A stretch of DNA of 64,000 nt from Hyaloraphidium curvatum SAG 235-1. Its lineage: Eukaryota; Fungi; Monoblepharomycota. The DNA lies in the NCBI GenBank assembly GCA_025558095.1, contig JAIVFI010000015.1, positions 1 through 64,000 on the forward strand. The letters run 5' to 3'. Positions 10,908 through 35,961 of the stretch are shown piece after piece. The position numbers were made by a program, and so were the translations under genes. Within the stretch, counting starts at the first letter, position 1. Each line of letters begins with the position of its first letter. A model generated the notes under the pieces. That model saw nothing but the letters and a program-made list of their open reading frames with translations. It was not told where the DNA came from and ran no database searches.

Positions 10908-10917
10908 TGAGATGCGC

Positions 10918-12099
10918 GCCCGACGGCGGCGTACACGTCCAGCTTCGACGAGATTGTGCGGAAGGAACCCGTCTACGTCGCCGGCCTCGAATCGCTCCTC
11001 GCCGCGCTCGCGCAAGTCGCGTTCCGGGTCGAGATCCTCAAGGAGGACGCGGAGCTCGGCTTCGCCTCGGCGCTCGCGCAGGTCGAAGAAGCCTGCAAGG
11101 TGCTGGCCGGGTCGGCGTGCAAGGGGAGCTGCCTGCACCTCGACGCGATGGTCGCGGAGCTCCGGCGCGCTTCGGGACCGGGGTGCGTCCTGCTGCTGCT
11201 GGTCGAGCTCCACAGGTACCTCGCGCTGGACCTGCTCCGCAACGCGGGCGACACGTGGGTCATCGCGCAGGCCTTCGCGCTCAAGGTGCGCTTTCGGGTG
11301 CCTCCGCGCATCGCCGGTCGGGGTCTGACGAACCGTGCCCGCGCAGTGGCCTCAATTCGAGATTTACTACCTCGAGTACATCGGCTTGATCCCCCGCCTC
11401 CAGCAGGTCGTCGCCGCCGCCGCCGCTGCCGGGCTCGTGGACACGGTCCCGGGGGTGAACGGCAAAATCAAGGTGCCCATGCTCGAGATGCTGGTCGCGC
11501 CCGAGAGACAGCTCGCGAACTACAAGATGCTCTTCGAGGTGCGTCCGCTCCCCGCGCCCTCCTCCCGCTGGGCTGACACCCGCTGCCACAGCGAATGCTC
11601 AAGGAGCTCCCCTCCATCGACCCGACCCAGGCGGCGCGGTTCAACCTCCTCGCCTTCGACGGTCAGCTCAACTCGTTCCTGCAGAGGGCAAACGCGGCGC
11701 CGGAGACCGGGAAGTGGGGGTTCATGGGCACGTTCGTGGGGTTTCTGGACGGGATGGCGCGGTGGCGGAAGGAGGCGGCGTCCTCGCCCGTCAAGGGGGC
11801 CGGGTTCCCCGCGCCCGCTCCCGCCGGCGCCATGGGGATGCTCTCGACGCTGCTCAGCCCGGGCCAGGTGGGTACACCGGGACATGCGCAGCCGCGGCTC
11901 CGGGGCCCTGATCTCCGTCGTACCCAGAGCAAGAAGCGCAAGCAGCGGGACGAGGATGCGGACGCGGACGAGCACGCGGACGGGGTGAGCGCTACCGATA
12001 CCGCGGGTCGCAAAGCCGCGACGCTGATTGCCCGTCCGCGCGCAGGGATCGCCGAGCAAGAGGAAGCGGGCGGTGATCGGACGGCGCTGGGCCAGGTGA
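10918..12099 (+). pseudogene. 5'-truncated paralog of the DH/RhoGEF-like gene at 26827-28120
   Basis: Highly similar to 26938-28120 including introns; the ATG and first ~37 codons are missing. Confidence 0.8.
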
Positions 12100-12418
12100 T
12101 GCGGACGCGGGCGGGAGGGATCAGCAGAGGAGCGAGGGGGCGTTTCGGCGAGGCTTGATGCGGCTGATGCACGGTCCCCGGCTCGACATTTCCATGTACA
12201 TATTGCACGATACCATGATCTCTCCCAGACGCAAACCGATGGTTTTCGACTCGAGTCGTTTCGAGTCGTTGGACTCGTCGGGACGGAGACGTCAATGTAC
12301 TTGTGCTCGGTTAAGTTAGCGGCGGGAAGCTTTGCGAAAAGAAGAATCACGTTTCGTGCTCCATGCTGTTCTTGGACAAGAGACACCGTTGCATTCAGAC
12401 TGGCCATCCGAGGGATTA

Positions 12419-12514
12419 GTGCTGGTGCGGGACTGCGCTGAGTTCGAGTTCCACTCCCGGCGCGAGTTCCAGGATGCTGTCCAGGCCGACGTTTTCCGGC
12501 GCGTCCAACGGGCC
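12419..12514 (+). pseudogene. Internal fragment of the F-box gene at 28666-29865
   Basis: VLVRDCAEFEFHSRREFQDAVQADVFRRVQRA matches 29020-29115. Confidence 0.85.
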
Positions 12515-12905
12515 GACAGGGCGGGTCCAGCTGGGGGTAAGTGCGCCATGCTGCTGACCCCGCCCGAAACTTCCCACGGCCGCCCGCACCGAATCGCCCT
12601 CGCTCCCCTTTCCGCACCGCGATGCCCGACATTACCCTGCGTTCCGGCCGCACGGTGTCGTTCCTCGACGACGGCGACCCGTCGGGCGCCGTGGTGCTCC
12701 ACGCCCAAGGCGGGCTCTTCTCGTCCGCCTACGCCGAGCTCGCCGGCCCAACCGCACTCTCCCTGCGCGTGCGATTGATCACGCCGGACCGGCCGGGCAG
12801 CAACCGGTCGTCGCCGCAGCCCGGCCGGACGCTGAAGGACTGGGCGGACGACGCGGTCGAGCTGCTGGACACTTTGGGCGTCAAGGGACGGGACCCGTGG
12901 GCGTG
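12515..12905 (+). pseudogene. Upstream region and 5' third of the alpha/beta hydrolase at 31853-32707
   Basis: MPDITLRSGRTVSFLDDGDP...LLDTLGVKG matches ~31747-32131; breaks before GWSMGG. Confidence 0.85.
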
Positions 12906-12908
12906 GAA

Positions 12909-13157
12909 GGAGCTTCCCGAGCCAGCGGTACCCCGGCAGCTCCTTCCATAGAAGCAAGAAAGCGTCAGCGCCGGCATGAACCCGTCCGTCGGAGTCGACG
13001 GCGTGCAGCCGCTTCTTGGCATCCTCCGATCCCACGCCGCACCGCTCCGGCGACGAAGGCTCGCCGACGGCATCCGAAAATCCTACAGCGGAGCCCAGCC
13101 GGGCAGCGATGCGCTGGTAGTGCTCGATTTCCAGGCGGCAGATGGGGCAGCTGCCGT
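12909..13157 (-). pseudogene. Internal fragment of the DCC-family gene at 34525-35022
   Basis: GSCPICRLEIEHYQR...LWKELPGYRWLGKL matches ~34636-34883. Confidence 0.85.
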
Positions 13158-13766
13158 CCGCGCTTCGGCGCGTCCTCCCTCCCCCTCCCGGACGAGCTCG
13201 CCGAGACGCTGCCGGAAGCCTATCGGTTGGATCCCGCGGCGATGGCCGCCGGTGAACCCGCATTGGAACCGCCTGCGCCGCTGAGGGCCGGACGGATCGT
13301 CGTCGAGGTGTTCGAGAAGGAGTGCCCGAAGGCGGCGGCAAACTTCCTGTCCCTGGTCAGGGGCGGCACGGTGTCGACGGTGCTGAAGAAGGAGCTAGCG
13401 TACAAGGGGAACAGGTTCCACCGGATCGTGCGGGGGTTCGTGGCGCAGGCCGGCGTCATGAATGACAAGACCGGGGCGGGCGAGTCGGTCTACGGGGGCA
13501 CGTTCAACGACGATAAGGCCGGACTGAAGATGAAGCACGACGCGCCGGGCGTGCTGGGCATGGCCAACTCGGGGAAGCCCAACACGAACACGTCCCAGTT
13601 CTACCTTACCTTCGGCAAGGACGAGAGGCTGGACGGAAAGCACGTCGTTTTTGGCCGGGTGGTCGAAGGCATCGAAGTGCTGCGAATGATCGAGGAGGAG
13701 GCGGCGAAGGAGGATGGGAAGCCGCCGAAGGCGGTGATCGCGATCGCGGACTGCGGCGGTCTTTGA
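13158..13766 (+). pseudogene. 5'-truncated cyclophilin paralog
   Basis: Matches 35255-35863 (FHRIVRGFVAQAG, MANSGKPNTNTSQF, HVVFGRV). The native start and promoter are deleted; an in-frame Met (AMAAGEP) remains upstream of the core. Confidence 0.8.
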
Positions 13767-14194
13767 ACGAGGAAGGGCTCCGGCTGGAATGAGCTCACGG
13801 GTCGCAGAAGATGACGGTGCTGGTGCGAGGGACGGGCCGTGCTGGGGCCGGCGGACCGATCAGGGCAGGCACGGCACGCATTGACACTGCCATCTCTGCG
13901 GAGCGAGATGGAAGCAGGAGCTGATGATGAGGCCTTTCGTAGCATTACTCTCGTACTACTTCGACTTGCGATTGAGGCGCGAAGTTCGAATCAGCGCTCA
14001 TTAGCGCTCCGAACCGAGCGCCCCACAACTGGCTTAGTGGTCTTCCCGAGTCGGGCCCTCGGGTTTGTACCTTACCCGGGTCGCTTCCGGTTAAACAGCG
14101 CCGGGCACCGCTTGGTGCCTGCGGCCATACGTCTCAACTGGTCCCGCCGTCCCGATACCTTTCGAATCTCGGGCCGGGACAACATCGCGCCGCC

Positions 14195-15204
14195 ATGTTC
14201 TCCGTGCTCTTTGCTATTCGCATGTTCGACCCGCGCTGCCGAAGTTTCTTTGAGCTGGGCGAAGGGAGCTTTGGCGTCAGTGAACGCGCCCTGAGGTTCC
14301 TCCTGCGCTCGACGATGACGCGACCGGACCTCGAGGAACCCGAGCTGGGGCCCGCTTTCGAATTCTTGAAATCCGTCGTCGCGTTGCGCGAGTGGGATTG
14401 CGTCAGGTGCGGGGCTCCGGCCGACGTCGAGATGCCCCAGCACCTGCGGTTCCCGTTCGAGGCACCGGCGCCAAGGATGGCGTTCACCGCGGTGCCCACC
14501 TGCGGACGGCCCAACTGTGTCTACGAGGGCACTCGCTTTCTCGTAAACGCTGGTCAAATTGCGGTACCGCTGTGGACGAAAGGGCCGGGCAACACCCAAG
14601 CGGACGCCCGAAACCAGAAGGCCGCGGTGCTGGTGACGCTCAAAGTCCGGACTGGAAAGAGCGAGGGGGCTATCATCGATGTGCCGGTCACAATCGAAGT
14701 CGACGCCGGACTGGTTGAGACCATGGCCACCGTGGTAGAGCTGAACAAGGCCATCGACAGCGCGACCGCACCACACATGGAAGCCACCCTTCAGAGCCTG
14801 CTACCTCCCTGCACTGCGCGTCTTGCGACGGTCCTGTTGTAGTCGGAGATCCCTGGCAGGGCTACATCGTGGTGCAAGGGGACCTTCGCAGCGCCGACAA
14901 CTTCTGCCACGTTTTGTGCGCGTCGTCAAGGAATCCGAAGTGCGTCGCGGCTTCGATGCACATCATGAAGCGTGACACGGCCACCGTCATGGATCCCAAG
15001 ATGCTAATCAAGGCGGTCCGATGCGTAGTCTGCGGTGGGATCACCTCCGATCCCACGAAGGAGTTCAAGTGCTGCTCGCGCTGCAAGCAAGCTCGCTACT
15101 GCTCGAAGGAGTGCCAGGCCGCGGACTGGCCGAAGCACAAGCCCGTTTGCAACGCGATCGTGGAAATGAAGAAGAGCGGGGAGCTGAAGGGCGGGAAGAA
15201 GTAG
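14195..15204 (+). pseudogene. MYND zinc-finger protein with a frameshift near 14805
   Basis: Paralog of 41611-42627, ending in CVVC..CSRCKQARYCSKECQAADWPKHKPVC. The frame changes at LLPP|LHCASCD. Confidence 0.75.
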
Positions 15205-15242
15205 TTGGGGAGAGACCAATTGTGTTCGACGCACGGGGGGGA

Positions 15243-15640
15243 TGACCCCATACACAGCGTCTCCATCGTCACATACACCCCCTCAGTATCCCCCACAGTC
15301 CGGTCCCGACGGTGAACACCACCACCACCAGCGTCCTCAGGCTCCCGTACCCAACCGCGAACCCCAGCAGCCTCACCCTCCCGTCACCGACCTCGGCGCA
15401 CGAGCCAGCAGAACCTCGTGCCCCGCGATCTCGTCGCGAACGGGGTCGCCGGGGGGGAAGCGAAGCCGCAGGGAGCGGAGGTCCCGCCGCGCGAGGCGGT
15501 ACAGGTCCATGAGCGACTCGGCCTGCGCATTGCAGGCGGCGATGGTGAGCATGTCAAAGCCCAGGCTGTAGCCGAGGAAGAGCAGGAAAAGGGAAGGCCA
15601 CGGATTCGGGCGGCCGGCTTGCTCCGCAGGATCCAACAGC
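15243..15640 (-). pseudogene. 3' fragment of the multi-TM family gene at 35962-37412
   Basis: LFLLFLGYSLGFDMLTIAACNAQAESL...RLLGFAVGYGSLRTLVVVV matches ~35962-36350, with small deletions. Confidence 0.8.
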
Positions 15641-15890
15641 CCTCGTCCCCGAGCTCCCACTAGCCGCGAGCTCGCGCTTCTGCAGGCGCTTCCGCCGTCA
15701 CGGCTGCCATCCCTGCTCGAGGTGCAGTTCGACGCCCTCCTCGGGCGCCATGCACCGCGAATCGATGAGGATGGTTCCTGCGTGTCGAGCGGTACCCGCT
15801 TCTCGAAGCGGAAGACGCGTCACCTTGGCGTGGTTTATGGCGCGCTGCTGCACGTGCCTTGAGAATGTCGATGACGAAGTGAAGGAGATG

Positions 15891-16053
15891 GGTGCCGTCG
15901 GGGCCTGTGACGCTGACCGGGTTGCCGAGATCGTCCGTGCCGACCAGGTTGATGGTCACGCCGGGGATGCCGGTTCGGGAACAGGTAGGTTCCGTCCCGG
16001 CCCGTGGTCGTCGTGAGGCTGACCGGGTGGCCTAGGTCGTCCGTGCCGACCAG
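15891..16053 (-). pseudogene. Two truncated SdrD-B/Cna-B-like repeat fragments
   Basis: LVGTDDLGHPVSLTTTTGRDGTYLFPN and GIPGVTINLVGTDDLGNPVS..TGPDGT. Confidence 0.6.
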
Positions 16054-16370
16054 GCGCCGCCGAGCCGGACCGCGGTTTCGGCCGGCCGGTCCGCGATGGC
16101 CGGCCCTCGCGGGCGGGCGGCAGAGGTCACGCGACGGAGGGCCCCCGGACATCGAGGCCGTCCGGCGCCGAGGCCGAGCAGGAGAAGGCCGTCGAGGCGC
16201 TCGCCCGGAAGCGGGTGGGGGACACAGCTCATTGGTCCGCCCTTCTTCCTGCGCATCCCCGAAGCCCAACGCGCGATTCCGGAGGTCCGGCACGCACAGC
16301 AGCGGAATAATGGAAATTTGTCGATGCTGCGATGGCGACCTTCTTCACGTTGGGAACGGAGCTGTTGGCA

Positions 16371-16394
16371 TGGTCTGGTCTGGTCTGGTCTGGT
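16371..16394 (-). repeat. (TGGTC)~5 microsatellite, interpreted as the LINE 3' tail
   Basis: tggtctggtctggtctggtctggt lies directly downstream of the LINE 3' UTR on the minus strand. Confidence 0.85.
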
Positions 16395-16976
16395 ATTTTC
16401 CGTCGGCGTCGCAATACACGAGGTAGATCGATGCCACTAGGTTATCGCGCCAAAGCGCTGTGTCCGCCGTCAATTCCTTTCCGTCAAATCCATTTCGCCA
16501 TCGCCGCTTGGCGTTTCAGAGCTCCGGATCGGTCTTCTTCTCGCGCACCTTCAAGGCCGAAGCCACGAAGGACGCTACCCATTTCCGAGTCCGGGGGGGC
16601 AGGCGCTCATCCTCCAGCATTGTCGAAGGGTCCTGCCACGTCGTCTTGAACAAGGCGGGCGACCAAGTGCGCCCAACCGTCGCTAGGCGGTCGACGAGCA
16701 CCGCCCGCGAAGCAGCCACGTGCGTGCACTCGAAGAGCAGGTGCAGCTCGTCATCCACGGCACGCTCATCCGTGCCACCAATCCTCCATCCACAATTGCA
16801 CACCCGCTGGTAGCGCGGCACCGCGGAGCCGTCGAGGTTGCGTTCGCGCCGGCCCGTCTCCGGCCGGAGGCAATGAGTGCTCGTGAGGAGCCGCAGCATC
16901 GCTGTCCGCTGTGTACGATGCACGAGATTCAGCACCGGGTGCCGGCTAAAGTTCCACTCCGAGTCCTCCAGCTGTA
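16371..16976 (-). mobile_element. 3' end of a 5'-truncated LINE (RTE-X/L2-like C-terminal zinc-knuckle region) with 3' UTR and simple-repeat tail
   Basis: RLLTSTHCLRPETGR..PRYQRVCNC..DDELHLLFEC motif, stop at 16516, ~120 nt UTR, then an (AGACC)n tail. Confidence 0.8.
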
Positions 16977-19900
16977 GCTGCGCATGGCTCGAGACGCCCA
17001 CCGAAGCGCCGGTCCGACAGCAGCGCCCATGGCCCCGCCGCTGCCACTTTGCTCCATCAAATAGCACTGCTAGCTTCCAGATCCGTAGTTGAATCGTTGC
17101 CGGAAAACTATCCGCGGAAGGATTGGGGTCGGCCGCGCGGCGCGGCGCATGGCTCGAGACGCCCACCGAAGCGCCGGTCCGACAGCAGCGCCCATGGCCC
17201 CGCCGCTGCAACTTTGCTCCATCAAATAGCACTGCTAGCATCCAGATCCGTGGTTGAGTCGCTGCCGGAAAACTATCTGCGGGAGGATTGGGGTCGGCCG
17301 CGCGGCGCGGCGCATGGCTCGAGACGCCCACCGAAGCGCCGGTCCGACCGCAGCGCCCATGGCCCCGCCACTGCCACTTTGCTCCATCAAATAGCACTGC
17401 TAGCTTCCAGATCCGTAGTTGAATCTTTGCCGGAAAACTATCTGCGCGAGGATTGGGGTCGGCCGCGCTGCGCATGGCTGGAGACGCCCACCGAAGCGCC
17501 GGTCCGACCGCAGCGCCCATGGCCCCGCGGCTGCCACTTTGTAGCATCGAAAAGCACTCTTGGCTTCCAGATCCGTGGTTGAGTCGTTGCCGGAAAACTA
17601 TCTGCGGGAGGATTGGGGTCGGCCGCGCGGCGCGGCGCATGGCTCGAGACGCCCACCGAAGCGCCGGTCCGACCGCAGCGCCCATGGCCCCGCGGCTGCC
17701 ACTTTGCTCCATCAAATAGCACTGCTAGCTTCCAGATCCGTAGTTGAATCTTTGCCGGAAAACTATCTGCGCGAGGATTGGGGTCGGCCGCGCTGCGCAT
17801 GGCTGGAGACGCCCACCGAAGCGCCGGTCCGACCGCAGCGCCCATGGCCCCGCGGCTGCCACTTTGCAGCATCGAAAAGCACTTTTGGCTTCCAGATCCG
17901 TGGTTGAGTCGCTGCCGGAAAACTATCTGCGGGAGGATTGGGGTCGGCCGCGCGGCGCGGCGCATGGCTCGAGACGCCCACCGAAGCGCCGGTCCGACCG
18001 CAGCGCCCATGGCCCCGCCGCTGCCACTTTGCTCCATCAAATAGCACTGCTAGCTTCCAGATCCGTAGTTGAATCGTTGCCGGAAAACTATCTGCGCGTG
18101 GATTGGGGTCGGCCGCGCGGCGCGGCGCATGGCTCGAGACGCCCACCGAAGCGCCCGTCCGACCGCAGCGCCCAAGGCCCCGCCACTGCCACTTTGCTCC
18201 ATCAAATAGCACTGCTAGCTTCCAGATCCGTAGTTGAATCTTTGCCGGAAAACTATCTGCGCGAGGATTGGGGTCGGCCGCGCTGCGCATGGCTGGAGAC
18301 GCCCACCGAAGCGCCGGTCCGACCGCAGCGCCCATGGCCCCGCCACTGCCACTTTGCTCCATCAAATAGCACTGCTAGCTTCCAGATCCGTGGTTGAATC
18401 TTTGCCGGAAAACTATCTGCGGGAGGATTGGGGTCGGCCGCGCGGCGCGGCGCATGGCTCGAGACGCCCACCGAAGCGCCGGTCCGACCGCAGCGCCCAT
18501 GGCCCCGCGGCTGCCACTTTGCTCCATCAAATAGCACTGCTAGCTTCCAGATCCGTAGTTGAATCTTTGCCGGAAAACTATCTGCGCGAGGATTGGGGTC
18601 GGCCGCGCTGCGCATGGCTGGAGACGCCCACCGAAGCGCCGGTCCGACCGCAGCGCCCATGGCCCCGCGGCTGCCACTTTGTAGCATCGAACAGCACTCT
18701 TGGCTTCCAGATCCGTGGTTGAATCTTTGCCGGAAAACTATCTGCGGGAGGATTGGGGTCGGCCGCGCGGCGCGGCGCATGGCTCGAGACGCCCACCGAA
18801 GCGCCGGTCCGACACCAGCGCCCATGGCCCCGCGGCTGCCACTTTGTAGCATCAAAAAGCACTCTTGGCTTCCAGATCCGTGGTTGAGTCGCTGCCGGAA
18901 AACTATCTGCGGGAGGATTGGGGTCGGCCGCGCGGCGCGGCGCATGGCTCGAGACGCCCACCGAAGCGCCGGTCCGACCGCAGCGCCCATGGCCCCGCCA
19001 CTGCCACTTTGCTCCATCAAATAGCACTGCTAGCTTCCAGATCCGTAGTTGAATCTTTGCCGGAAAACTATCTGCGGGAGGATTGGGGTCGGCCGCGCGG
19101 CGCGGCGCATGGCTCGAGACGCCCACCGAAGCGCCGGTCCGACCGCAGCGCCCATGGCCCCGCGGCTGCCACTTTGCAGCATCGAAAAGCACTTTTGGCT
19201 TCCAGATCCGTGGTTGAGTCGCTGCCGGAAAACTATCTGCGGGAGGATTGGGGTCGGCCGCGCTGCGCATGGCTGGAGACGCCCACCGAAGCGCCGGTCC
19301 GACCGCAGCGCCCATGGCCCCGCGGCTGCCACTTTGTAGCATCGAACAGCACTCTTGGCTTCCAGATCCGTGGTTGAATCTTTGCCGGAAAACTATCTGC
19401 GGGAGGATTGGGGTCGGCCGCGCGGCGCGGCGCATGGCTCGAGACGCCCACCGAAGCGCCGGTCCGACACCAGCGCCCATGGCCCCGCGGCTGCCACTTT
19501 GTAGCATCAAAAAGCACTCTTGGCTTCCAGATCCGTGGTTGAGTCGCTGCCGGAAAACTATCTGCGGGAGGATTGGGGTCGGCCGCGCGGCGCGGCGCAT
19601 GGCTCGAGACGCCCACCGAAGCGCCGGTCCGACAGCAGCGCCCATGGCCCCGCGGCTGCCACTTTGTAGCATCAAAAAGCACTCTTGGCTTCCAGATCCG
19701 TGGTTGAGTCGCTGCCGGAAAACTATCTGCGGGAGGATTGGGGTCGGCCGCGCGGCGCGGCGCATGGCTCGAGACGCCCACCGAAGCGCCGGTCCGACAG
19801 CAGCGCCCATGGCCCCGCCGCTGCAACTTTGCTCCATCAAATAGCACTGCTAGCATCCAGATCCGTGGTTGAGTCGCTGCCGGAAAACTATCTGCGGGAG

Positions 19901-22900
19901 GATTGGGGTCGGCCGCGCGGCGCGGCGCATGGCTCGAGACGCCCACCGAAGCGCCGGTCCGACCGCAGCGCCCATGGCCCCGCGGCTGCCACTTTGCTCC
20001 ATCAAATAGCACTGCTAGCTTCCAGATCCGTAGTTGAATCTTTGCCGGAAAACTATCTGCGCGAGGATTGGGGTCGGCCGCGCTGCGCATGGCTGGAGAC
20101 GCCCACCGAAGCGCCGGTCCGACCGCAGCGCCCATGGCCCCGCGGCTGCCACTTTGTAGCATCGAAAAGCACTCTTGGCTTCCAGATCCGTGGTTGAGTC
20201 GTTGCCGGAAAACTATCTGCGGGAGGATTGGGGTCGGCCGCGCGGCGCGGCGCATGGCTCGAGACGCCCACCGAAGCGCCGGTCCGACACCAGCGCCCAT
20301 GGCCCCGCGGCTGCCACTTTGTAGCATCAAAAAGCACTCTTGGCTTCCAGATCCGTGGTTGAGTCGCTGCCGGAAAACTATCTGCGGGAGGATTGGGGTC
20401 GGCCGCGCGGCGCGGCGCATGGCTCGAGACGCCCACCGAAGCGCCGGTCCGACAGCAGCGCCCATGGCCCCGCCGCTGCAACTTTGCTCCATCAAATAGC
20501 ACTGCTAGCATCCAGATCCGTGGTTGAGTCGCTGCCGGAAAACTATCTGCGGGAGGATTGGGGTCGGCCGCGCGGCGCGGCGCATGGCTCGAGACGCCCA
20601 CCGAAGCGCCGGTCCGACCGCAGCGCCCATGGCCCCGCGGCTGCCACTTTGCTCCATCAAATAGCACTGCTAGCTTCCAGATCCGTAGTTGAATCTTTGC
20701 CGGAAAACTATCTGCGCGAGGATTGGGGTCGGCCGCGCTGCGCATGGCTGGAGACGCCCACCGAAGCGCCGGTCCGACCGCAGCGCCCATGGCCCCGCGG
20801 CTGCCACTTTGTAGCATCGAAAAGCACTCTTGGCTTCCAGATCCGTGGTTGAGTCGTTGCCGGAAAACTATCTGCGGGAGGATTGGGGTCGGCCGCGCGG
20901 CGCGGCGCATGGCTCGAGACGCCCACCGAAGCGCCGGTCCGACAGCAGCGCCCATGGCCCCGCCGCTGCAACTTTGCTCCATCAAATAGCACTGCTAGCA
21001 TCCAGATCCGTGGTTGAGTCGCTGCCGGAAAACTATCTCCGGGAGGATTGGGGTCGGCCGCGCGGCGCGGCGCATGGCTCGAGACGCCCACCGAAGCGCC
21101 GGTCCGACCGCAGCGCCCATGGCCCCGCCACTGCCACTTTGCAGCATCGAAAAGCACTTTTGGCTTCCAGATCCGTGGTTGAGTCGCTGCCGGAAAACTA
21201 TCTGCGGGAGGATTGGGGTCGGCCGCGCTGCGCATGGCTGGAGACGCCCACCGAAGCGCCGGTCCGACCGCAGCGCCCATGGCCCCGCCACTGCCACTTT
21301 GCAGCATCGAAAAGCACTTTTGGCTTCCAGATCCGTGGTTGAGTCGCTGCCGGAAAACTATCTGCGGGAGGATTGGGGTCGGCCGCGCGGCGCGGCGCAT
21401 GGCTCGAGACGCCCACCGAAGCGCCGGTCCGACAGCAGCGCCCATGGCCCCGCCACTGCCACTTTGCTCCATCAAATAGCACTGCTAGCTTCCAGATCCG
21501 TGGTTGAGTCGCTGCCGGAAAACTATCTGCGGGAGGATTGGGGTCGGCCGCGCGGCGCGGCGCATGGCTCGAGACGCCCACCGAAGCGCCGGTCCGACCG
21601 CAGCGCCCATGGCCCCGCCGCTGCCACTTTGCAGCATCGAAAAGCACTTTTGGCTTCCAGATCCGTGGTTGAGTCGCTGCCGGAAAACTATCTGCGGGAG
21701 GATTGGGGTCGGCCGCGCGGCGCGGCGCATGGCTCGAGACGCCCACCGAAGCGCCGGTCCGACAGCAGCGCCCATGGCCCCGCCGCTGCAACTTTGCTCC
21801 ATCAAATAGCACTGCTAGCATCCAGATCCGTGGTTGAGTCGCTGCCGGAAAACTATCTGCGGGAGGATTGGGGTCGGCCGCGCGGCGCGGCGCATGGCTC
21901 GAGACGCCCACCGAAGCGCCGGTCCGACCGCAGCGCCCATGGCCCCGCGGCTGCCACTTTGCTCCATCAAATAGCACTGCTAGCTTCCAGATCCGTAGTT
22001 GAATCTTTGCCGGAAAACTATCTGCGCGAGGATTGGGGTCGGCCGCGCTGCGCATGGCTGGAGACGCCCACCGAAGCGCCGGTCCGACCGCAGCGCCCAT
22101 GGCCCCGCGGCTGCCACTTTGTAGCATCGAAAAGCACTCTTGGCTTCCAGATCCGTGGTTGAGTCGTTGCCGGAAAACTATCTGCGGGAGGATTGGGGTC
22201 GGCCGCGCGGCGCGGCGCATGGCTCGAGACGCCCATCGAAGCGCCGGTCCGACAGCAGCGCCCATGGCCCCGCCGCTGCAACTTTGCTCCATCAAATAGC
22301 ACTGCTAGCATCCAGATCCGTGGTTGAGTCGCTGCCGGAAAACTATCTGCGGGAGGATTGGGGTCGGCCGCGCGGCGCGGCGCATGGCTCGAGACGCCCA
22401 CCGAAGCGCCGGTCCGACCGCAGCGCCCATGGCCCCGCCACTGCCACTTTGCTCCATCAAATAGCACTGCTAGCTTCCAGATCCGTGGTTGAATCTTTGC
22501 CGGAAAACTATCTGCGGGAGGATTGGGGTCGGCCGCGCGGCGCGGCGCATGGCTCGAGACGCCCACCGAAGCGCCGGTCCGACCGCAGCGCCCATGGCCC
22601 CGCGGCTGCCACTTTGCAGCATCGAAAAGCACTTTTGGCTTCCAGATCCGTGGTTGAGTCGCTGCCGGAAAACTATCTGCGGGAGGATTGGGGTCGGCCG
22701 CGCGGCGCGGCGCATGGCTCGAGACGCCCACCGAAGCGCCGGTCCGACCGCAGCGCCCATGGCCCCGCCGCTGCCACTTTGCAGCATCGAAAAGCACTTT
22801 TGGCTTCCAGATCCGTGGTTGAGTCGCTGCCGGAAAACTATCTGCGGGAGGATTGGGGTCGGCCGCGCGGCGCGGCGCATGGCTCGAGACGCCCACCGAA

Positions 22901-25900
22901 GCGCCGGTCCGACAGCAGCGCCCATGGCCCCGCCGCTGCAACTTTGCTCCATCAAATAGCACTGCTAGCATCCAGATCCGTGGTTGAGTCGCTGCCGGAA
23001 AACTATCTGCGGGAGGATTGGGGTCGGCCGCGCGGCGCGGCGCATGGCTCGAGACGCCCACCGAAGCGCCGGTCCGACCGCAGCGCCCATGGCCCCGCGG
23101 CTGCCACTTTGCAGCATCGAAAAGCACTTTTGGCTTCCAGATCCGTGGTTGAGTCGCTGCCGGAAAACTATCTGCGGGAGGATTGGGGTCGGCCGCGCGG
23201 CGCGGCGCATGGCTCGAGACGCCCACCGAAGCGCCGGTCCGACCGCAGCGCCCATGGCCCCGCCGCTGCCACTTTGCTCCATCAAATAGCACAGCTAGCT
23301 TCCAGATCCGTAGTTGAATCGTTGCCGGAAAACTATCTGCGCGTGGATTGGAGTCGGCCGCGCGGCGCGGCGCATGGCTCGAGACGCCCACCGAAGCGCC
23401 GGTCCGACCGCAGCGCCCATGGCCCCGCCACTGCCACTTTGCTCCATCAAATAGCACTGCTAGCTTCCAGATCCGTGGTTGAATCTTTGCCGGAAAACTA
23501 TCTGCGGGAGGATTGGGGTCGGCCGCGCGGCGCGGCGCATGGCTCGAGACGCCCACCGAAGCGCCGGTCCGACAGCAGCGCCCATGGCCCCGCGGCTGCC
23601 ACTTTGTAGCATCGAAAAGCACTTGTGGCTTCCAGATCCGTGATTGAGTCGCTGCCGGAAAACTATCTGCGGGAGGATTGGGGTCGGCCGCGCGGCGCGG
23701 CGCATGGCTCGAGACGCCCACCGAAGCGCCGGTCCGACCGCAGCGCCCATGGCCCCGCGGCTGCCACTTTGTAGCATCGAACAGCACTCTTGGCTTCCAG
23801 ATCCGTGGTTGAATCTTTGCCGGAAAACTATCTGCGGGAGGATTGGGGTCGGCCGCGCGGCGCGGCGCATGGCTCGAGACGCCCACCGAAGCGCCGGTCC
23901 GACCGCAGCGCCCATGGCCCCGCGGCTGCCACTTTGTAGCATCGAACAGCACTCTTGGCTTCCAGATCCGTGGTTGAATCTTTGCCGGAAAACTATCTGC
24001 GGGAGGATTGGGGTCGGCCGCGCGGCGCGGCGCATGGCTCGAGACGCCCACCGAAGCGCCGGTCCGACCGCAGCGCCCATGGCCCCGCGGCTGCCACTTT
24101 GTAGCATCGAACAGCACTCTTGGCTTCCAGATCCGTGGTTGAGTCGCTGCCGGAAAACTATCTGCGGGAGGATTGGGGTCGGCCGCGCGGCGCGGCGCAT
24201 GGCTCGAGACGCCCACCGAAGCGCCGGTCCGACAGCAGCGCCCATGGCCCCGCCGCTGCAACTTTGCTCCATCAAATAGCACTGCTAGCATCCAGATCCG
24301 TGGTTGAGTCGCTGCCGGAAAACTATCTCCGGGAGGATTGGGGTCGGCCGCGCGGCGCGGCGCATGGCTCGAGACGCCCACCGAAGCGCCGGTCCGACCG
24401 CAGCGCCCATGGCCCCGCCACTGCCACTTTGCTCCATCAAATAGCACTGCTAGCTTCCAGATCCGTGGTTGAATCTTTGCCGGAAAACTATCTGCGGGAG
24501 GATTGGGGTCGGCCGCGCGGCGCGGCGCATGGCTCGAGACGCCCACCGAAGCGCCGGTCCGACCGCAGCGCCCATGGCCCCGCGGCTGCCACTTTGCAGC
24601 ATCGAAAAGCACTTTTGGCTTCCAGATCCGTGGTTGAGTCGCTGCCGGAAAACTATCTGCGGGAGGATTGGGGTCGGCCGCGCGGCGCGGCGCATGGCTC
24701 GAGACGCCCACCGAAGCGCCGGTCCGACCGCAGCGCCCATGGCCCCGCCACTGCCACTTTGCTCCATCAAATAGCACTGCTAGCTTCCAGATCCGTGGTT
24801 GAGTCGCTGCCGGAAAACTATCTGCGGGAGGATTGGGGTCGGCCGCGCGGCGCGGCGCATGGCTCGAGACGCCCACCGAAGCGCCGGTCCGACAGCAGCG
24901 CCCATGGCCCCGCCGCTGCAACTTTGCTCCATCAAATAGCACTGCTAGCATCCAGATCCGTGGTTGAGTCGCTGCCGGAAAACTATCTCCGGGAGGATTG
25001 GGGTCGGCCGCGCGGCGCGGCGCATGGCTCGAGACGCCCACCGAAGCGCCGGTCCGACCGCAGCGCCCATGGCCCCGCCACTGCCACTTTGCTCCATCAA
25101 ATAGCACTGCTAGCTTCCAGATCCGTAGTTGAATCTTTGCCGGAAAACTATCTGCGCGAGGATTGGGGTCGGCCGCGCTGCGCATGGCTGGAGACGCCCA
25201 CCGAAGCGCCGGTCCGACCGCAGCGCCCATGGCCCCGCGGCTGCCACTTTGTAGCATCGAACAGCACTCTTGGCTTCCAGATCCGTGGTTGAATCTTTGC
25301 CGGAAAACTATCTGCGGGAGGATTGGGGTCGGCCGCGCGGCGCGGCGCATGGCTCGAGACGCCCACCGAAGCGCCGGTCCGACCGCAGCGCCCATGGCCC
25401 CGCCGCTGCCACTTTGCTCCATCAAATAGCACTGCTAGCTTCCAGATCCGTAGTTGAATCGTTGCCGGAAAACTATCTGCGCGTGGATTGGAGTCGGCCG
25501 CGCGGCGCGGCGCATGGCTCGAGACGCCCACCGAAGCGCCGGTCCGACAGCAGCGCCCATGGCCCCGCCGCTGCAACTTTGCTCCATCAAATAGCACTGC
25601 TAGCATCCAGATCCGTGGTTGAGTCGCTGCCGGAAAACTATCTGCGGGAGGATTGGGGTCGGCCGCGCGGCGCGGCGCATGGCTCGAGACGCCCACCGAA
25701 GCGCCGGTCCGACCGCAGCGCCCATGGCCCCGCGGCTGCCACTTTGCAGCATCGAAAAGCACTTTTGGCTTCCAGATCCGTGGTTGAGTCGCTGCCGGAA
25801 AACTATCTGCGGGAGGATTGGGGTCGGCCGCGCGGCGCGGCGCATGGCTCGAGACGCCCACCGAAGCGCCGGTCCGACACCAGCGCCCATGGCCCCGCGG

Positions 25901-26590
25901 CTGCCACTTTGCTCCATCAAATAGCACTGCTAGCTTCCAGATCCGTAGTTGAATCTTTGCCGGAAAACTATCTGCGGGAGGATTGGGGTCGGCCGCGCGG
26001 CGCGGCGCATGGCTCGAGACGCCCACCGAAGCGCCGGTCCGACAGCAGCGCCCATGGCCCCGCCGCTGCAACTTTGCTCCATCAAATAGCACTGCTAGCA
26101 TCCAGATCCGTGGTTGAATCTTTGCCGGAAAACTATCTGCGGGAGGATTGGGGTCGGCCGCGCGGCGCGGCGCATGGCTCGAGACGCCCACCGAAGCGCC
26201 GGTCCGACCGCAGCGCCCATGGCCCCGCGGCTGCCACTTTGCTCCATCAAATAGCACTGCTAGCTTCCAGATCCGTAGTTGAATCTTTGCCGGAAAACTA
26301 TCTGCGCGAGGATTGGGGTCGGCCGCGCTGCGCATGGCTGGAGACGCCCACCGAAGCGCCGGTCCGACCGCAGCGCCCATGGCCCCGCGGCTGCCACTTT
26401 GTAGCATCGAACAGCACTCTTGGCTTCCAGATCCGTGGTTGAATCTTTGCCGGAAAACTATCTGCGGGAGGATTGGGGTCGGCCGCGCGGCGCGGCGCAT
26501 GGCTCGAGACGCCCACCGAAGCGCCGGTCCGACACCAGCGCCCATGGCCCCGCGGCTGCCACTTTGTAGCATCAAAAAGCACTCTTGGCT
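16977..26590. repeat. Tandem satellite array, ~58 units of 165 bp (11 counted as a 160-bp variant)
   Basis: The unit gcgcatggctcgagacgcccaccgaagcgccggtccgac...ggaaaactatctgcgggaggattggggtcggccgcgcggc repeats continuously with sharp boundaries. Confidence 0.98.
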
Positions 26591-26826
26591 GAGCGATGCG
26601 CCGCGTTCTGCGTGCCCGTGCGGCCTCATCGGGTCGTGCCCGCGTGCCCTCCGCACCCCGCTCCCAAACTTCCCCTCGACTCTCGCGCGCGCCCCCGCTG
26701 ACGCGCCTGGCGCCCGCACCTGCCGCCCCGCCCCCGCGCTCTCCGCACGCGGTTCTTTGCGCAGGCGGCCGCGCGGCCCCCGCCGCCCGTTTCCCGCACG
26801 GACAAACAACGCAGCGCTTCTCGGAG

Positions 26827-28120
26827 ATGGCGTCCTACTCGGCGCAGCTGCCCGGGCCTCCCGCACCGCCTACCGCCACAGACTCCATCCTTACCCTCGG
26901 CGCTTCGTCGATGAACATCCTGGCCCCCGCAACCCCCGCCCCGACGGCGGCGTACACGTCCAGCTTCGACGAGATCGTGCGGAAGGAACAGCTCTACGTC
27001 ACCGGCCTCGAATCGCTCCTTGCCGCGTTCACCGAAGTTGCTTTCCGGGCCGAAAGCCTCAAGGAGTTCGCGGAGCTCGGATTCGCCTCGGCACTCGCCC
27101 AGGTCGAAGAAGTCTGCAAGGTGCTGGCCGGATCGGCGTGTAAGGGAAGCTGCCTGCACCTCGACGCGATGCTCGCGGAGCTCCGGCGCGCTTCGGGACC
27201 GGGGTGCGTCCTGCTGCTGCTGGTCGAGCTGCACAGGTACCTCGCGCTGGACCTGCTCCGCAACGCGGGTGACACCTGGGTCATTGCGAAGGCCTTCGCG
27301 CTCAAGGTGCGCTTTCGGTTGCCTCGGCGCATCGCCGGTCGGGGTCTGACGAACCGCGCCCGCGCAGTGGCCTCAATTCGAGATTTACTACCACGAGTAC
27401 ATCAGCTTGATCCCCCGCCTCCAGCAGGTCGTCGCCGCCGCCGCCGCCGCCGGGCTCGTGGACACGGTCCCGGGGGCGAACGGCAAATTCAAGGTGCCCA
27501 TGCTCGAGATGCTGGTCGCGCCGGAAAGACAGCTCGCGAACTACAAGATGCTTTTCGAGGTGCGTCCGCTCCCCGCGCCGTCCTCCCGCTGGGCTGACTC
27601 ACGCCGGCCACAGCGAATGCTCAAGGAGCTCCCCTCCATCGACCCGACCCAGGCCGCGCGATTCAACCTCCTCGCGTTCGACGGCCAGCTCAACTCGTTC
27701 CTGCAGAGGGCCAACGCGGCGCCGGAGGCCGGGAAGCGGGGGTTCATGGGCACGTTCGTGGGGTTCCTCGACGGCATGGCAAGGTGGCGGAAGGAGGCGG
27801 CGTCCTCGCCCGTCAAGGGAGCCGGGTTCCCCGCGCCCGCGCCCGCCAGCGCTATGGGGATGCTGTCGACGCTGCTCAGCCCGGGCCAGGTGGGTGCACC
27901 GGCGCATGCGCAGCCGCGGCTCCGTGGCCCTGATCTCCGTCGTGCCCAGAGCAAGAAGCGCAAGCAGCGGGACGAGGATGCCGACGCGGAAGAGCAGGCG
28001 GACGGGGTGAGCGTTCCCGACACCGCGGGTTGGAAGCCGCGGCGCTGATTGCCTGTCCGCGCGCAGGGATCGCCGAGCAAGAGGAGGAGGGCGGCGATCG
28101 GACGGCGCTGGGCCAGGTGA
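26827..28120 (+). CDS. Dbl-homology (RhoGEF)-like domain protein, multi-exon
   Basis: DEIVRKEQLYVTGLESL and MLVAPERQLANYKMLFE|RMLKE resemble DH conserved regions CR1 and CR3; GT-AG introns are present. Confidence 0.65.
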
Positions 28121-28665
28121 TGCGGACGCGGGCGGGAGGGATCAGAGGAGCGAGGGGGCGTTTCGGCGGGGCTTGATACGGCTGATGCACGGTCTGCGGC
28201 TCGACATTTCCATGTACATTTTGCACGATACCATGATCTCTCCCAGACGCACCGCTGGTTTTCGACACGAGTCGTTTCGAGTCGTTGGACTCGTCGGGAC
28301 CGAGACATCAATGTACTTATGGTCGGCCAAGTTTGCGGCGAGAAGCTTTTCGAAGAGAACAATCACGTTTCGTGCTCCATGCTTTTCTTGGATAAAGGAT
28401 ACCATTGCATTCGGACCGGCCGTCCGAGGATCCGGGGCGTGGCGAAGGCGACCTACGACGCGACCGCCGTCCCTTCCACAAACTCGGCCATCGCGGCGTC
28501 GGAGCAGAACTGGAAGCCGCCGTATTCGCAATGCAAATTGCTACCGGTACTCTTGCGGCGCAGGCCACGGGCTTCCCTGCCCGCGCCGGCGCGCCCGCTC
28601 CGTCGGAGAGGGTCGTGCTCGCGCGGGTCGCGGTCCGCCCGCGGGCGAGGTCGGCGCCGCCCGAG

Positions 28666-29865
28666 ATGGACCGCAGCCCATACGCGCTGCACCCGCGTCG
28701 CCTGACCGATCTGCCCGCCGAGCTGCTCGACGCCGTCGCCCGCATCCTCGCGTCGGCGGGCGACGCCATGGCGCTTGCCCGCCTCATGCGCGTGTGCCGC
28801 TCCCTCCGCGCCTCCGCCTCGCCCGCATTGGCAACGCTGGGCCGCGTGCTCGGCGAGGCCCGCATCTGCAAGGGCCGCCTGGTGCGCGTCTGCGGCTCCA
28901 CAGGCCTCGACCGCCTGTCGCACCTCAACCTGAGCCCCCTGTTCTCCGCGGACATCAAGACGTTGCGCATGTTCGCAGGATACGCCGGTTGCGACGAGAA
29001 CCTGGACAAGGTGCTCGGCGTGCTGCTGCGGGACTGCGTTGAGTTCGAGTTCCACTCCCGGCGCGAGTTCCACGATGCTGTTCAGGCCGACGTTTTCAGG
29101 CGCGTCCAACGGGCCATCGACGGCGTCGTCAGCCTGACCAAGCTCGAGCTGCTCTTCGGGAACGACGAGACGCGATTCGAGCTCCGCTCCGTCCCCCCCG
29201 GCGTCACGCAGGTCTGCGTTGGACAGGATCTACGGGCGCATGGCACTGGCATGGAACAATTTCTGGACCTGCTCGCCGGAATTCCCACCGTCGCCACGAT
29301 CGAGGTGGACGCGCGGAACGACTCGGCGATGTTGCACCGGCTGCGTCGTCCTCAAGTCGTCACTCGGATCAAGACCTACCACGTATTCGTGGCGGAGTGG
29401 GGCGGCCTCTCCCAGATCGCCGGCTTCGCGCCTGTTACGCTGGTGGTGCACTTGGCCACGGCGGATGGCAAGAGAGCCTTCTTTTCCCCCGAAACTTTCT
29501 GGTGGAAGGTCGCCAGGCTCCCCTCGCTCGAGAACCTGGTCTTCGTCGGCGCCGGGACGTCCGTTCTCGTCGGCGCCGGGACGTTCATTCTCGTGCATGC
29601 CGACCTTCGCAGCAACCTCAAGAGGATCGTGCTCGACCGACCCCGCCCCGACCTTCCCGTCAACGACTTCGCGGACATCCGCGGCACGTTCTCGGCGGAC
29701 TGCGCGCCGACGGTGCAGATCCGCGTGCGCGAGGGCGAGTGGTTCGGCCAGGGGCCCAAGGTGGAGAGGGAGCTCAAGTTCTGGCGGTCGCTGGGGGCCG
29801 ACGTGCACCCGGTGCTGAAATGGGACGATCTGCCGGCAGAGTACGGAACGTGGAGCCCGCTCTGA
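28666..29865 (+). CDS. F-box-like / degenerate LRR protein
   Basis: LTDLPAELLDAVARIL...LMRVCRSLR at the N-terminus, followed by LxxLxL-type repeats; long ORF. Confidence 0.7.
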   Translation: MDRSPYALHPRRLTDLPAELLDAVARILASAGDAMALARLMRVCRSLRASASPALATLGRVLGEARICKGRLVRVCGSTGLDRLSHLNLSPLFSADIKTLRMFAGYAGCDENLDKVLGVLLRDCVEFEFHSRREFHDAVQADVFRRVQRAIDGVVSLTKLELLFGNDETRFELRSVPPGVTQVCVGQDLRAHGTGMEQFLDLLAGIPTVATIEVDARNDSAMLHRLRRPQVVTRIKTYHVFVAEWGGLSQIAGFAPVTLVVHLATADGKRAFFSPETFWWKVARLPSLENLVFVGAGTSVLVGAGTFILVHADLRSNLKRIVLDRPRPDLPVNDFADIRGTFSADCAPTVQIRVREGEWFGQGPKVERELKFWRSLGADVHPVLKWDDLPAEYGTWSPL

Positions 29866-30069
29866 TGGGCCCGCGGGGTACGCGTGGAGGAGGGGCCGCG
29901 GTCGACCCTGGGCGTGGACGCGGAGGATGCGGAGCCGTGGAGATCGCGTACAGGGTAGTCGACGGGGCGACGATGGGGAAGAGATATCAGAGCCAGATTG
30001 GCAAATAATTCCTTATATCTACGCTGAACTGAGTCAAACGCACGAGGCCGAAGGCCAACTTGATGACGA

Positions 30070-31400
30070 TCATATCTCCGCGTGACCCCCTACGCACCCC
30101 CACCCGAAAGCCTCTGGAAGCTCGAACCTCGCCGCGCCGCCTCCACGCCCGGGAGGGCGGCACACGCTCCCGTGCGACGGCCAGGCGGCACGCTGGCAGG
30201 CGGAGGAGCAGTACCGCGCGAGCTTGCAGCTGCCGCAGCGGAGGAACTTGGTATGCTTGGTCTCGTGGTCGTGACCCGCGGAAAGGTTGGTTTCGTGCTC
30301 GCCGCCGGCCGCAGTCTGGCTTCCGGAGGCCGACGCGTGTCCCTCCTGCCGATCTTCGCCCTCCGCGGTCCTGCTTCCGGCGCCCGCCGCGCACCCGTTG
30401 TCGCACGTCTCTTCGGCCGCGTACACCCGCGCGGCCGCAAGCAGGAACCCAACGTGGTTCACGTCCTCCTCCGACGAGAGTGGCCCGGTGAGCTCCAGCG
30501 CCGCAGCCACCACCCGCAGCATCATCTCCTAATCCCGCAGGCTGTCGTCGTAGTCCTCGACGCACGTGCGCGACCACGGGGGCGTGTTGCGCATCGCACC
30601 GAGCATCAGGACGGCGGAGGAGAACTGTTCCACCGGCAGCGGGAGGCCGCGCGACCGCAAGGCACGGCAGTGGTCCCTCCAAGGCTTCTCTGTGGCCGCG
30701 ACCGCCCGCTCCAGGATCAGCGGGCTCGCCAGCATCCCCTCCACCAGATTGTCCAGATGCTTCGGCCACATGTGCAGCTGCGGCCACATGGTCTCCATGA
30801 CGAACCCATGCCGCCGGAGGCCCTCCGTCACCCGGATGGTGTAGATCGCGTGGCGGAACAGCGGGCGCAGTGCACCGTACAGCGCCAGGGCGTCCAGGAG
30901 CTCGGGATCCTCGGCGAGCCGGCGGCGGACGACCGAGTTGTAGGTCATGATCACGAGGATCCCCATCGCGTGCTTGGCTTCCCGCCCGAACAGGCCGTCG
31001 TAGACCTCGGTCGCCCAGCGCCCCATCTGCCCCACGGCTGTGTCGGGGAGCTCGGCACCCCACGCCGCGCGCCGCTCCCTGCTCACGAAGGCCATGATCA
31101 CCCGCCGCAGAACTGGGGCACGAAGGCCATGATCACCCGCCGCAGAACGGGGGCAATGCGGGGGAAGACGAGGCCCGACATGGTGATGAGCGGCTCCGCC
31201 GGGAAGCCGTCCTCGAAGTCCAGTGGGCGCAGCGCGCCCTTTGGGAAGAAGTCCGAAACTTGTTCCCAGGCCGACACGTCGTTGTCGAAACATAGCGTGT
31301 CGACCTGGCGGAAGACATTCTGCAGGCACCCGCCGTCGGCGCAGTGCCCCACGGGGTCGTGCGCGCGGACGTGGTGCGGTCTCGACGGAGGAAGCGCGGA
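30070..31400 (-). pseudogene. MYND zinc-finger pseudogene
   Basis: C-terminal CGSCKLARYCSSACQRAAWPSHGSVC. It has an in-frame TAG at 30529-30531, a 35-bp tandem duplication (31084-31153) causing a frameshift, and no in-frame ATG. Confidence 0.75.
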
Positions 31401-31852
31401 GTGGAAGGTGGAGTGGCGAAATCGTCGGGCGGGTCCAGGCCGTGGGGGATCGATCGCGCTGTGCTGCGGCTCCGTGGGACAGATAGGCCATTCGAAGATC
31501 GTTCACTGCATCCCGGGTTCTCCGAGGCAAATGATGCCTCGCTTCATCCTTTAGACCTGCATCCGCATCGCGATGCACGTGGTCAAGCAGGTTTCTCGGC
31601 ACACGGATCAATCTCGGCCTGACTGCCTCCCAAGTGTGCATCACGATCATCAAGGCAATCAAGGCGCAGGAGGACTATGCAAATTACTGCAGTACATGTA
31701 CGGCAAGCTCAAATCCCGGGCCGCATCGAGCCATTCTCGAGCTGGAGAAAGGGCGGGTCCAGGCGCGCCGCGCTGCGCCATTGCTGACGCCGCCCGAAAC
31801 TTCCCACGGCCGCCCACACCGAATCGTCCTCCGCTCCCTATTTCGCAGCACG

Positions 31853-32707
31853 ATGCCCGACGTTACCCTGCGTTCCGGCCGCATCGTGTCGTACCGCGAC
31901 GACGGCGACCCGGCCGGCGCCGTGGTGCTCCACGCCCACGGCGGCCTCTTCTCGTCCGCTTACGCCGAGCTCGCCGGCCCCACCGCCCTCGCCCTGCGCG
32001 TGCGGTTGATCACGCCGGACCGGCCGGGCATCAATCGGTCGTCGCCGCAGCCCGGACGGACGCTGAAGGACTGGGCGGACGACGCGGTCGAGCTGCTGGA
32101 CATTTTGGGCGTCAAGGGGCCCGTGGGCGTGCTGGGATGGTCTATGGGCGGGCAATACGCGCTCGCACTCGCTGCGTTCCACCCGGAACGCGTGTCGTCG
32201 GGCGTCGTGGTCGCCGGCGCCGTGCCGCTTGACGACCCCGCCGCCCGGGCGACGTTGAACCACATGGACGCAAAGTACACGCACCTTGCGGAGGACCAGC
32301 CGAAGAAGCTCGCCAGCAACTTCTCCGGAATGAAGGTCGCGGTGCAGCTGTTCCCGAACATCACGGCCAAGTACATCGGCAAGGCGATGGGGCCCGAGGA
32401 CAAGGCCGTGATCGCAGGGTTGCCCAACAAGGATCCGATCGTGCACTCGTTCGCAGAGGCCGTGAAGCAGACCGACGGGCTGGTGGAGGAGTACCGGGCT
32501 TGGGCGCTCCCCTGGGGATTCAATTACGGAGACGTGAAACCGCCCTTCACGGTGATCTGGGGCAAGGCGGACCACCTGATCCCGCAACAATGGGCCGAGG
32601 AGTACGCCAAAGGGCTCGGGACGGAGCTACGGATCGTCGACGGCGGGCATGCCTGGTTCTTGGCAGACTGGGAGCCGGTGCTGCGCCAGTTTGCGTGGAA
32701 GCAATGA
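31853..32707 (+). CDS. Alpha/beta hydrolase fold protein (intronless)
   Basis: HG oxyanion motif, DRPG, GWSMGG nucleophile elbow, WGKAD acid and GGH histidine. Confidence 0.9.
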   Translation: MPDVTLRSGRIVSYRDDGDPAGAVVLHAHGGLFSSAYAELAGPTALALRVRLITPDRPGINRSSPQPGRTLKDWADDAVELLDILGVKGPVGVLGWSMGGQYALALAAFHPERVSSGVVVAGAVPLDDPAARATLNHMDAKYTHLAEDQPKKLASNFSGMKVAVQLFPNITAKYIGKAMGPEDKAVIAGLPNKDPIVHSFAEAVKQTDGLVEEYRAWALPWGFNYGDVKPPFTVIWGKADHLIPQQWAEEYAKGLGTELRIVDGGHAWFLADWEPVLRQFAWKQ

Positions 32708-34087: not shown

Positions 34088-34524
34088 TCCCTTTCGCGTA
34101 GCAGACGTCCTTTTCGGCAGCGGAACGGGGCGCTGAGCCGGGTGAGAACTGTGCTATGTGTTATGTTGCGGGACGGCGATCCCGCAACGATCCCGTCGTT
34201 GAAGCCGCATTTCAGGTCGACTAAAAAAAAAAAACAGTTAGCAACAAAAGCATGTCAAGATGCGTGTTTCTGTGTTGCTATCTATTCCGGGAGTGCTTCC
34301 CGCGGTACATACAGGCCAGAGTGAAAAGTTAAGCCGCACGTGAATGCCAGCACCCCGGGCAGGAGAAAAATCACTGTATTGCTTCTTGTCAACTACGGCA
34401 ATAAATCGCTCGCACGTGCATAGTCGATCGGCAGCACGGCCGATCGTCGCCCTGTCGAATTGAGAGGACGAGCCAGCGTGGCACGGGACTATGGCTAGAT
34501 GTCGACGTGATCCCGGATCGCAGC

Positions 34525-35022: not shown

Positions 35023-35149
35023 CTCGTCCTCCTTCGTCTCTTTTCTTTCGAAGTTGCGACGTTGAATCGGGTTCGAGGCGACTTCTCAGAAGCACGCGGG
35101 CCGGCGTTTCCCGCGTTATTCTGCCGATTCCTGCCTCACCGCGGCCGTC

Positions 35150-35863: not shown

Positions 35864-35961
35864 CAGCTATGGACGCGCCCACAGGGCTGGCTAACGGAGC
35901 AACTTCTTCAGAATTACTGCTTCCGGGTTGTGGCCCGGTCCGCGGTCCCATAGCCCCCCGA

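Follow-up and report, generated by a model that had tools for sequence, protein, structure and literature searches.

A 5'-truncated LINE fragment directly adjoining a locus-specific 165-bp tandem array in Hyaloraphidium curvatum

Introduction

At one locus of the fungus Hyaloraphidium curvatum, a long tandem array of 165-bp units runs on the minus strand straight into the 3' end of a LINE, and the reading frame of the LINE continues into the array. The arrangement raises the question whether the array and the LINE tail constitute a single mobile element or are two unrelated repeats that happen to be neighbors. The first-pass annotation of the window (the entire stretch of 64,000 nucleotides analyzed here, that is, the first 64 kb of contig C15 in an assembly of 31.9 Mb, 55 contigs and ~66% G+C) offered two options: (a) a composite or retro-dispersed element that consists of a head of tandem monomers and a LINE tail, or (b) a 5'-truncated LINE inserted at the edge of an array. 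Had option (a) held, the locus would have represented an SVA/LAVA-like composite outside primates or a route for satellites spread by LINEs.

Layout of the locus

The claimed layout, with the array leading directly into a LINE C-terminus followed by a UTR and an (AGACC)n tail on the minus strand, was confirmed by Tandem Repeats Finder (TRF) and by reading of the sequence. The parts are as follows:

16372..16391, minus strand: LINE 3' tail, (AGACC)x4, read from the sequence, with a partial repeat base at 16371
16392..16515, minus strand: LINE 3' UTR, 124 nt, between the TGA stop and the tail
16516..16978, minus strand: C-terminal 153 codons and stop of LINE ORF2, 5'-truncated, with a Cys/His motif region (BLASTP and copy alignment)
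16979..16979, minus strand: junction base 'A' (alignment with three longer LINE copies and comparison of unit variants)
16980..26590, minus strand: locus-specific tandem array (TRF; unit register and lengths)

The LINE 3' end spans 608 bp (16371-16978, minus strand), and its ORF2 terminates with a TGA stop (16518-16516, minus strand). The minus-strand translation across the join reads ..GVSSHAQ/LQLEDSEW..HCLRPETGR..CNC..H..C, followed by the TGA, the UTR and the tail.

The LINE fragment is a truncated member of a low-copy family

A Pfam search with the 154-codon junction frame 16519-16980 (1 array or filler codon plus 153 LINE codons) produced no match. BLASTP aligned the window peptide with residues 603-709 of a 724-aa RVT_1 ORF from an APE-type LINE in the same genome (E 4e-10), and what lies just upstream in the longer siblings could be aligned with residues 386-533, which follow immediately on the RT domain (E 9e-19). 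These alignments identify the window piece as colinear with the end of an APE-type LINE, comprising the C-terminus of ORF2, the 3' UTR and the tail. A DNA query (16371-16979) located ~30 further places in the assembly; a protein query with the corresponding domain of the C23 copy returned the same ~30 places along with ~90 more distant matches (33-44% identity) that belong to an abundant element family of this genome, with reading frames containing Exo_endo_phos_2 and RVT_1. A cluster look-up of the related ORF2 yielded RVT_1 clusters, with a Tx1-like cluster lower down the list.

The window LINE shows 98-99% nucleotide identity to the copies C23, C19 and C3, with the 3' UTR conserved at the same level in these three copies, and 98.2% identity to its closest siblings. 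In the family alignment, for which the longest young copy, C23, served as the reference, the copies have the 3' end in common, and the (AGACC)n tail ends nearly all of them; the 5' ends vary, falling between ~60 and at least 1380 bp before the tail (reference L002 positions 723-2047). In the C23, C19 and C45 copies, the LINE coding sequence goes on upstream exactly at the point where the window copy stops (16978); in C23, for example, LQLEDSEW is preceded by ..KLDFWRW. Because these copies read on as LINE ORF, the window copy is a 5'-truncated member of the family. An intact full-length master copy was not found in the assembly, and the RT-bearing part of the family was found solely in a degenerate form, on C35. 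The window LINE is a dead-on-arrival fragment of an uncharacterized family with a pentanucleotide tail.

The 165-bp array is specific to a single locus

TRF detected a single large array of ~9.6 kb with a period of 165 bp (58.5 copies, 92% matches) and a higher-order period of 490 bp. The array comprises 57 full units, 44 of them 165 bp and 13 of them 160 bp long, and two partial units at the edges. The full units represent 31 distinct sequences with a mean pairwise identity of 93%, and for many of them a 100% identical unit exists tens of units away; such identical units far apart indicate ongoing unequal exchange or conversion in the array. Compared to the interior units, the 128-bp partial unit that ends the array on the far side has 0 mismatches, and its 133-bp counterpart on the LINE side has 1. 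Since both edges are sharp and look freshly homogenized rather than decayed, the present size of the array is recent.

Outside the array, a 25-nt pattern from the unit, searched with up to 2 mismatches, matched at one position (C13:634829), compared to 58 matches within the array and 0 for the reversed-pattern control; a six-frame protein search with three units likewise recovered only the window array and C13. The C13 piece is a solo 250-bp fragment of 1.5 units, with no LINE tail beside it. It sits between stretches resembling exons of an unrelated leucine-rich-repeat-like gene, in sequence that is probably intronic or intergenic. The piece is 93% identical to a dimer from the array in which the end of a 160-type unit is followed by a 165-type unit, so that both unit variants are present, and its flanks are unrelated to the window by blastn or tblastn. 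With one array and one 250-bp solo piece in 31.9 Mb, a genome-wide satellite family was rejected: the 165-bp array is specific to a single locus.

Two other origins of the unit were considered and rejected. A ribozyme or circular-RNA (retrozyme-like) origin is countered by the absence of Rfam matches for the unit, whether at gathering scores or with E relaxed to 5, and by fold z-scores of +1.25 and +2.86, that is, a structure less stable than that of shuffled sequence. A coding origin is countered by the unit translation, for which no Pfam family reached the cut-off (best E 0.011), and by the lack of protein-level relatives in the genome besides C13.

The unit-LINE junction is unique

The array (from 16980) and the LINE (to 16978) are separated by at most 1 nt. 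The 'A' at 16979 may be a 1-nt filler; alternatively, with a terminal unit ending like the 160-bp variant, it would belong to a 2-bp (GC) microhomology.

No other unit-LINE junction exists in the 31.9-Mb assembly. When three units were compared by BLAST to 70 loci outside the window, 29 of which hold other LINE copies, only the C13 locus matched; thus, units are absent beside all 29 other LINE-copy loci, each taken with 1.5-kb flanks. The longer LINE copies (C23, C45 and C35) have no unit at their 5' ends, and the sequence upstream is either LINE ORF or unrelated flank. As to whether full-length LINEs carry the unit upstream, none of the longer copies does, and the assembly yielded no full-length copy. 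The junction is unique, the unit at C13 stands without a LINE and ~30 LINE copies stand without the unit, which is the pattern that the first-pass annotation itself had set against a fused element.

These observations bear directly on option (a), in the form of either a non-autonomous composite retroelement, in which a monomer head and a LINE tail are combined as in SVA or LAVA, or a satellite that the LINE machinery has spread. The orientation, the direct join and the 249-codon continuous frame would all suit such an element. However, its junction would be expected in more than the single copy seen here, the unit is missing at all other LINE loci and, apart from C13, where it has no LINE, throughout the remainder of the 31.9-Mb assembly, and an array of 9.6 kb far exceeds a typical retrotransposed head. 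Option (a) is therefore refuted for this assembly, and we regard it as extremely improbable.

Another concern is that the junction could be a chimeric join introduced during the assembly of repeats. Public reads from three runs of the same organism, with no run on record as RNA, cover parts of the stretch, in the form of short unitig-type contigs that break at every repeat. Among these short contigs, none listed bridges 16978/16980, and those that cover 16552-16978 have 7 differences from the window and continue into longer LINE copies, both of which speak for an artificial join; an empty-site joint was not seen in them either. The evidence for the unit-LINE junction hence comes from the assembly. 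Nevertheless, contigs of this type break at repeats by their nature, in X1 the window's own letters at 16929 and 16947 make up part of the depth (45.9 of 272.9) and the array bins are covered, the assembly is highly contiguous (55 contigs), and the pattern of variants inside the array is orderly. An assembly artefact thus appears very unlikely.

The shared reading frame is coincidental

The claim that the stop-free frame of the unit is the LINE frame is valid for the 165-bp consensus, in which one of the three sense frames is open, but this continuity is limited and is not sustained across the array. Beyond the join, the LINE frame runs on through 249 codons of array sequence until a stop at 17727 closes it, giving a combined junction ORF of 399 aa (16516-17715); over the whole array, it meets 32 stops. 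The break is due to the 160-bp units, 13 of the 57 full ones, each of which rotates the frame. Open frames are common in sequence of this kind: when 165-mers of matched composition were shuffled, 62% contained one or more on a strand. In agreement with the one-in-three chance of a frame match that was noted at the outset, the two frames agree by coincidence, and selection has left no sign. The in-frame join is weak evidence, and nothing indicates a fusion protein.

Target-site duplications are not detectable in the LINE family

As originally noted, no convincing target-site duplication (TSD) is present at the window copy. A CCATGC 6-mer occurs after the tail and again 3 nt before the junction, which is within the null distribution. 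For 18 family copies, the longest words that the 5' and 3' flanks have in common do not exceed in length those of mismatched flank pairs. Because the entire family shows no detectable TSDs compared to these mismatched controls, their absence in the window says nothing about how this copy arose. A comparison around the whole composite (26591 onward versus below 16371) likewise gave no match and has low power for a family of this kind.

Surroundings of the array and the LINE

Two direct copies of a gene block enclose the array and the LINE, and deletions have reduced the first copy from 9.4 to 4.7 kb:

10915..15602, plus strand: deletion-collapsed direct copy of block 26937-36329 (BLASTN, six colinear segments, 89-95% identity)
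15603..16370: flank on the LINE-tail side, with remnants of a repeat-protein gene (~15640-16055) followed by unique sequence (genome search)
26591..26936: flank at the far array edge, unique, matching itself only in the genome search

Local alignment revealed no significant similarity between the flank 26591-26936 and the unit. The tail-side flank was considered as a decayed array unit and rejected, given that its local alignment to unit trimers was no better than that of shuffled sequence. Comparison of both flanks (15603-16370 and 26591-26936) with the sequence beyond the duplicated block gave noise only. There is no telomeric repeat at the contig start, and no association of the array with a centromere or telomere was seen. 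This interval is decaying and prone to rearrangement, in keeping with an ordinary accumulation of junk sequence; it also leaves room for later rearrangement as the origin of the junction.

Under such a scenario, a longer LINE would have lost its 5' part after insertion, through deletion, unequal exchange or segmental rearrangement, and the array would have been brought next to the remainder. The position between direct block copies, one of them halved by deletions, the gene remnants adjoining the LINE tail and the abruptness of both array edges are all compatible with a later breakpoint of this kind. Yet variable 5' truncation is the norm of the family and calls for no extra event, and the LINE is young (1.8% divergence from its siblings) compared to the block copies (8-11% divergence), so that we consider a post-insertion breakpoint unlikely, albeit the least so among the alternatives. 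A junction with 0-2 bp of microhomology fits both joining at the time of insertion and a later breakpoint.

A likely order of events

In our assessment, the locus is likely to have originated by an ordinary 5'-truncated LINE insertion that adjoins a pre-existing, locus-specific array and is in frame with it by chance. Option (b) is supported by three lines of evidence: the read-through of the sibling copies at the truncation point, the spectrum of truncations in the family and the apparent age of the repeat. With respect to the latter, the match of the C13 piece to a dimer of a 160-type and a 165-type unit implies that the repeat, with its variant types, predates the split from C13. The repeat would also be older than the LINE insertion, given the 93% identity between C13 and the array as against 98.2% between the LINE and its siblings; judging from these sequence identities, and assuming comparable neutral rates, it is probably several times older. 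Most probably, then, the LINE landed at or in an existing array or proto-array.

The events can be envisaged as follows. A low-copy APE-type LINE with an (AGACC)n tail would have retrotransposed by target-primed reverse transcription (TPRT), inserting next to, or into the end of, the already existing array or proto-array. Reverse transcription, or attachment of the 5' end, would have stopped 608 bp from the LINE 3' end, and end-joining would then have connected the cDNA end to the array, leaving either 0-2 bp of microhomology or a 1-nt filler at the junction. The lack of units on the tail side could be accounted for by insertion at the true array edge, by a proto-array that was short at the time or by a deletion at the target site, all of which are known outcomes of LINE insertion (PMC2912911, PMC1920257); chance insertion at the exact array edge, with neither a short array nor a deletion, is unlikely. 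On this reading, the array and the junction are both immobile.

An alternative is a chimeric retrocopy, whereby the RT, during TPRT, switched template from the LINE RNA to a transcript of the repeat (from C13 or from a lost array), so that one cDNA carried both the unit(s) and the LINE 3' end into the site, and the units were later amplified in place. The confinement of the array to the 5' side of the LINE, the clean join with at most 1 nt of filler and the fact that the unit otherwise occurs only as a short piece of 1.5 units are what such a switch could leave behind. However, no TSD is shared by the far array edge and the tail flank; the C13 piece, in its probable intron or intergenic stretch, shows no evidence of transcription or of a LINE tail; the array has neither an RNA-family match nor excess structure; and a single event of this kind is indistinguishable from simple adjacency. 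We accordingly assign this scenario a very low probability. The broader notion that the array was seeded by the LINE machinery, whether through a template switch or through capture of LINE cDNA at a double-strand break in a fragile repeat, with subsequent amplification of the units, seems equally doubtful; if true, a new tandem array would here have been founded by retrotransposition.

Comparison to known systems

The closest parallel to the proposed insertion into or beside the array is found in human L1, for which 5'-truncated TPRT insertions and the structures of integration sites (PMC2912911), as well as endonuclease-independent variants (PMC1920257), have been described. As in the human L1 insertions, the window LINE has an intact 3' end with a family-specific tail, belongs to a set of variably 5'-truncated copies, is joined at its 5' end with 0-2 bp of microhomology or a short filler, and lies in or near repetitive DNA. 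Unlike human L1, it carries an (AGACC)n pentanucleotide tail instead of poly(A), and its family has neither detectable TSDs nor a full-length master in the assembly.

SVA and LAVA (short for L1-Alu-VNTR-Alu-like) are composite retrotransposons with a VNTR (PMC5174737, PMC4432496). Their resemblance to the window locus consists in a tandem-repeat region 5' of a LINE-derived 3' end. In contrast to SVA and LAVA, with their many dispersed copies, common internal junctions and TSDs, the locus described here has a unique junction and a single array of 9.6 kb with one solo fragment elsewhere.

The tandem units that adjoin the window LINE in sense orientation also recall the monomers of rodent L1. The rodent monomers are located upstream of the 5' UTR and ORF1 in full-length elements and are present in many copies, whereas the window array borders on the final 153 codons of ORF2, and the unit accompanies none of the other LINE copies.

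The array itself is most similar to a locus-specific macrosatellite or large minisatellite: it is confined to a single locus rather than being genome-wide, has a ~165-bp unit with few variants arranged in higher-order patterns and includes identical units at a distance from each other. The locus is a chance juxtaposition of two ordinary things, a LINE fragment and a private, actively homogenizing 165-bp array, and as such matters little beyond its use in annotation: the 399-aa junction-spanning ORF is not to be annotated as a gene, and the array is to be masked as a locus-specific tandem repeat.

Distribution of the 165-bp unit

Across the whole 31.9-Mb, 55-contig assembly (G000), the 165-bp unit occurs outside the array only once, as a solo piece:

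G000:C13:634742-634991 (1499-1750 of L031, the sequence around this locus), 1.5 units

This piece is 93% identical to the array and has a period of 160 bp; the 5-bp CGCGC duplication found in the 165-bp variant is absent from it. On both sides it is flanked by exon-like sequence from an LRR-like gene. The array may have arisen from this piece, or the piece may be a captured fragment.

The array and the LINE occupy the interval between the two copies of a direct segmental duplication that consists of six colinear pieces, 89-95% identical, with the upstream copy cut to half its length by deletions:

Window 10915-15602, upstream copy
Window 26937-36329, downstream copy

LINE families

The (AGACC)n-tailed LINE family includes recent copies with 98-99% mutual identity, and is represented in the assembly at these loci, among others:

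C23, 264.0-265.4 kb
C19, 526.0-526.6 kb
C3, 176.4-176.7 kb
C35, 478.1-479.7 kb

A search of the assembly for an intact full-length copy found none; the only RT-bearing piece, on C35, contains a stop codon and has an inverted partner nearby (80% identical).

In the abundant related APE-type family, matches to the RT and C-terminal domains recur at fixed spacing, and therefore these LINE fragments have themselves been amplified as tandem arrays:

C12, 481.5-493.4 kb, spacing ~2028 bp
C37, 304-316 kb, spacing ~2011 bp
C36, 186-192 kb, spacing 1239 bp
C11, 506-540 kb, spacing ~11.08 kb

The contigs involved often carry a single cluster each, and the clusters look like centromere-type islands.

Other repeats in the window

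Two further repeats were detected:

Window 15840-16055, remnant of a repeat-protein coding motif, matching C2 (1108-1114 kb) and C7 (18-22 kb)
Window 58207-58498, 146-bp tandem duplication

The C2 and C7 counterparts of the remnant are long in-gene tandem repeats, and the very high summed contig depth over it in public runs is consistent with a multi-copy coding repeat. The two copies of the 146-bp duplication are 100% identical, and this duplication is apparently very recent.
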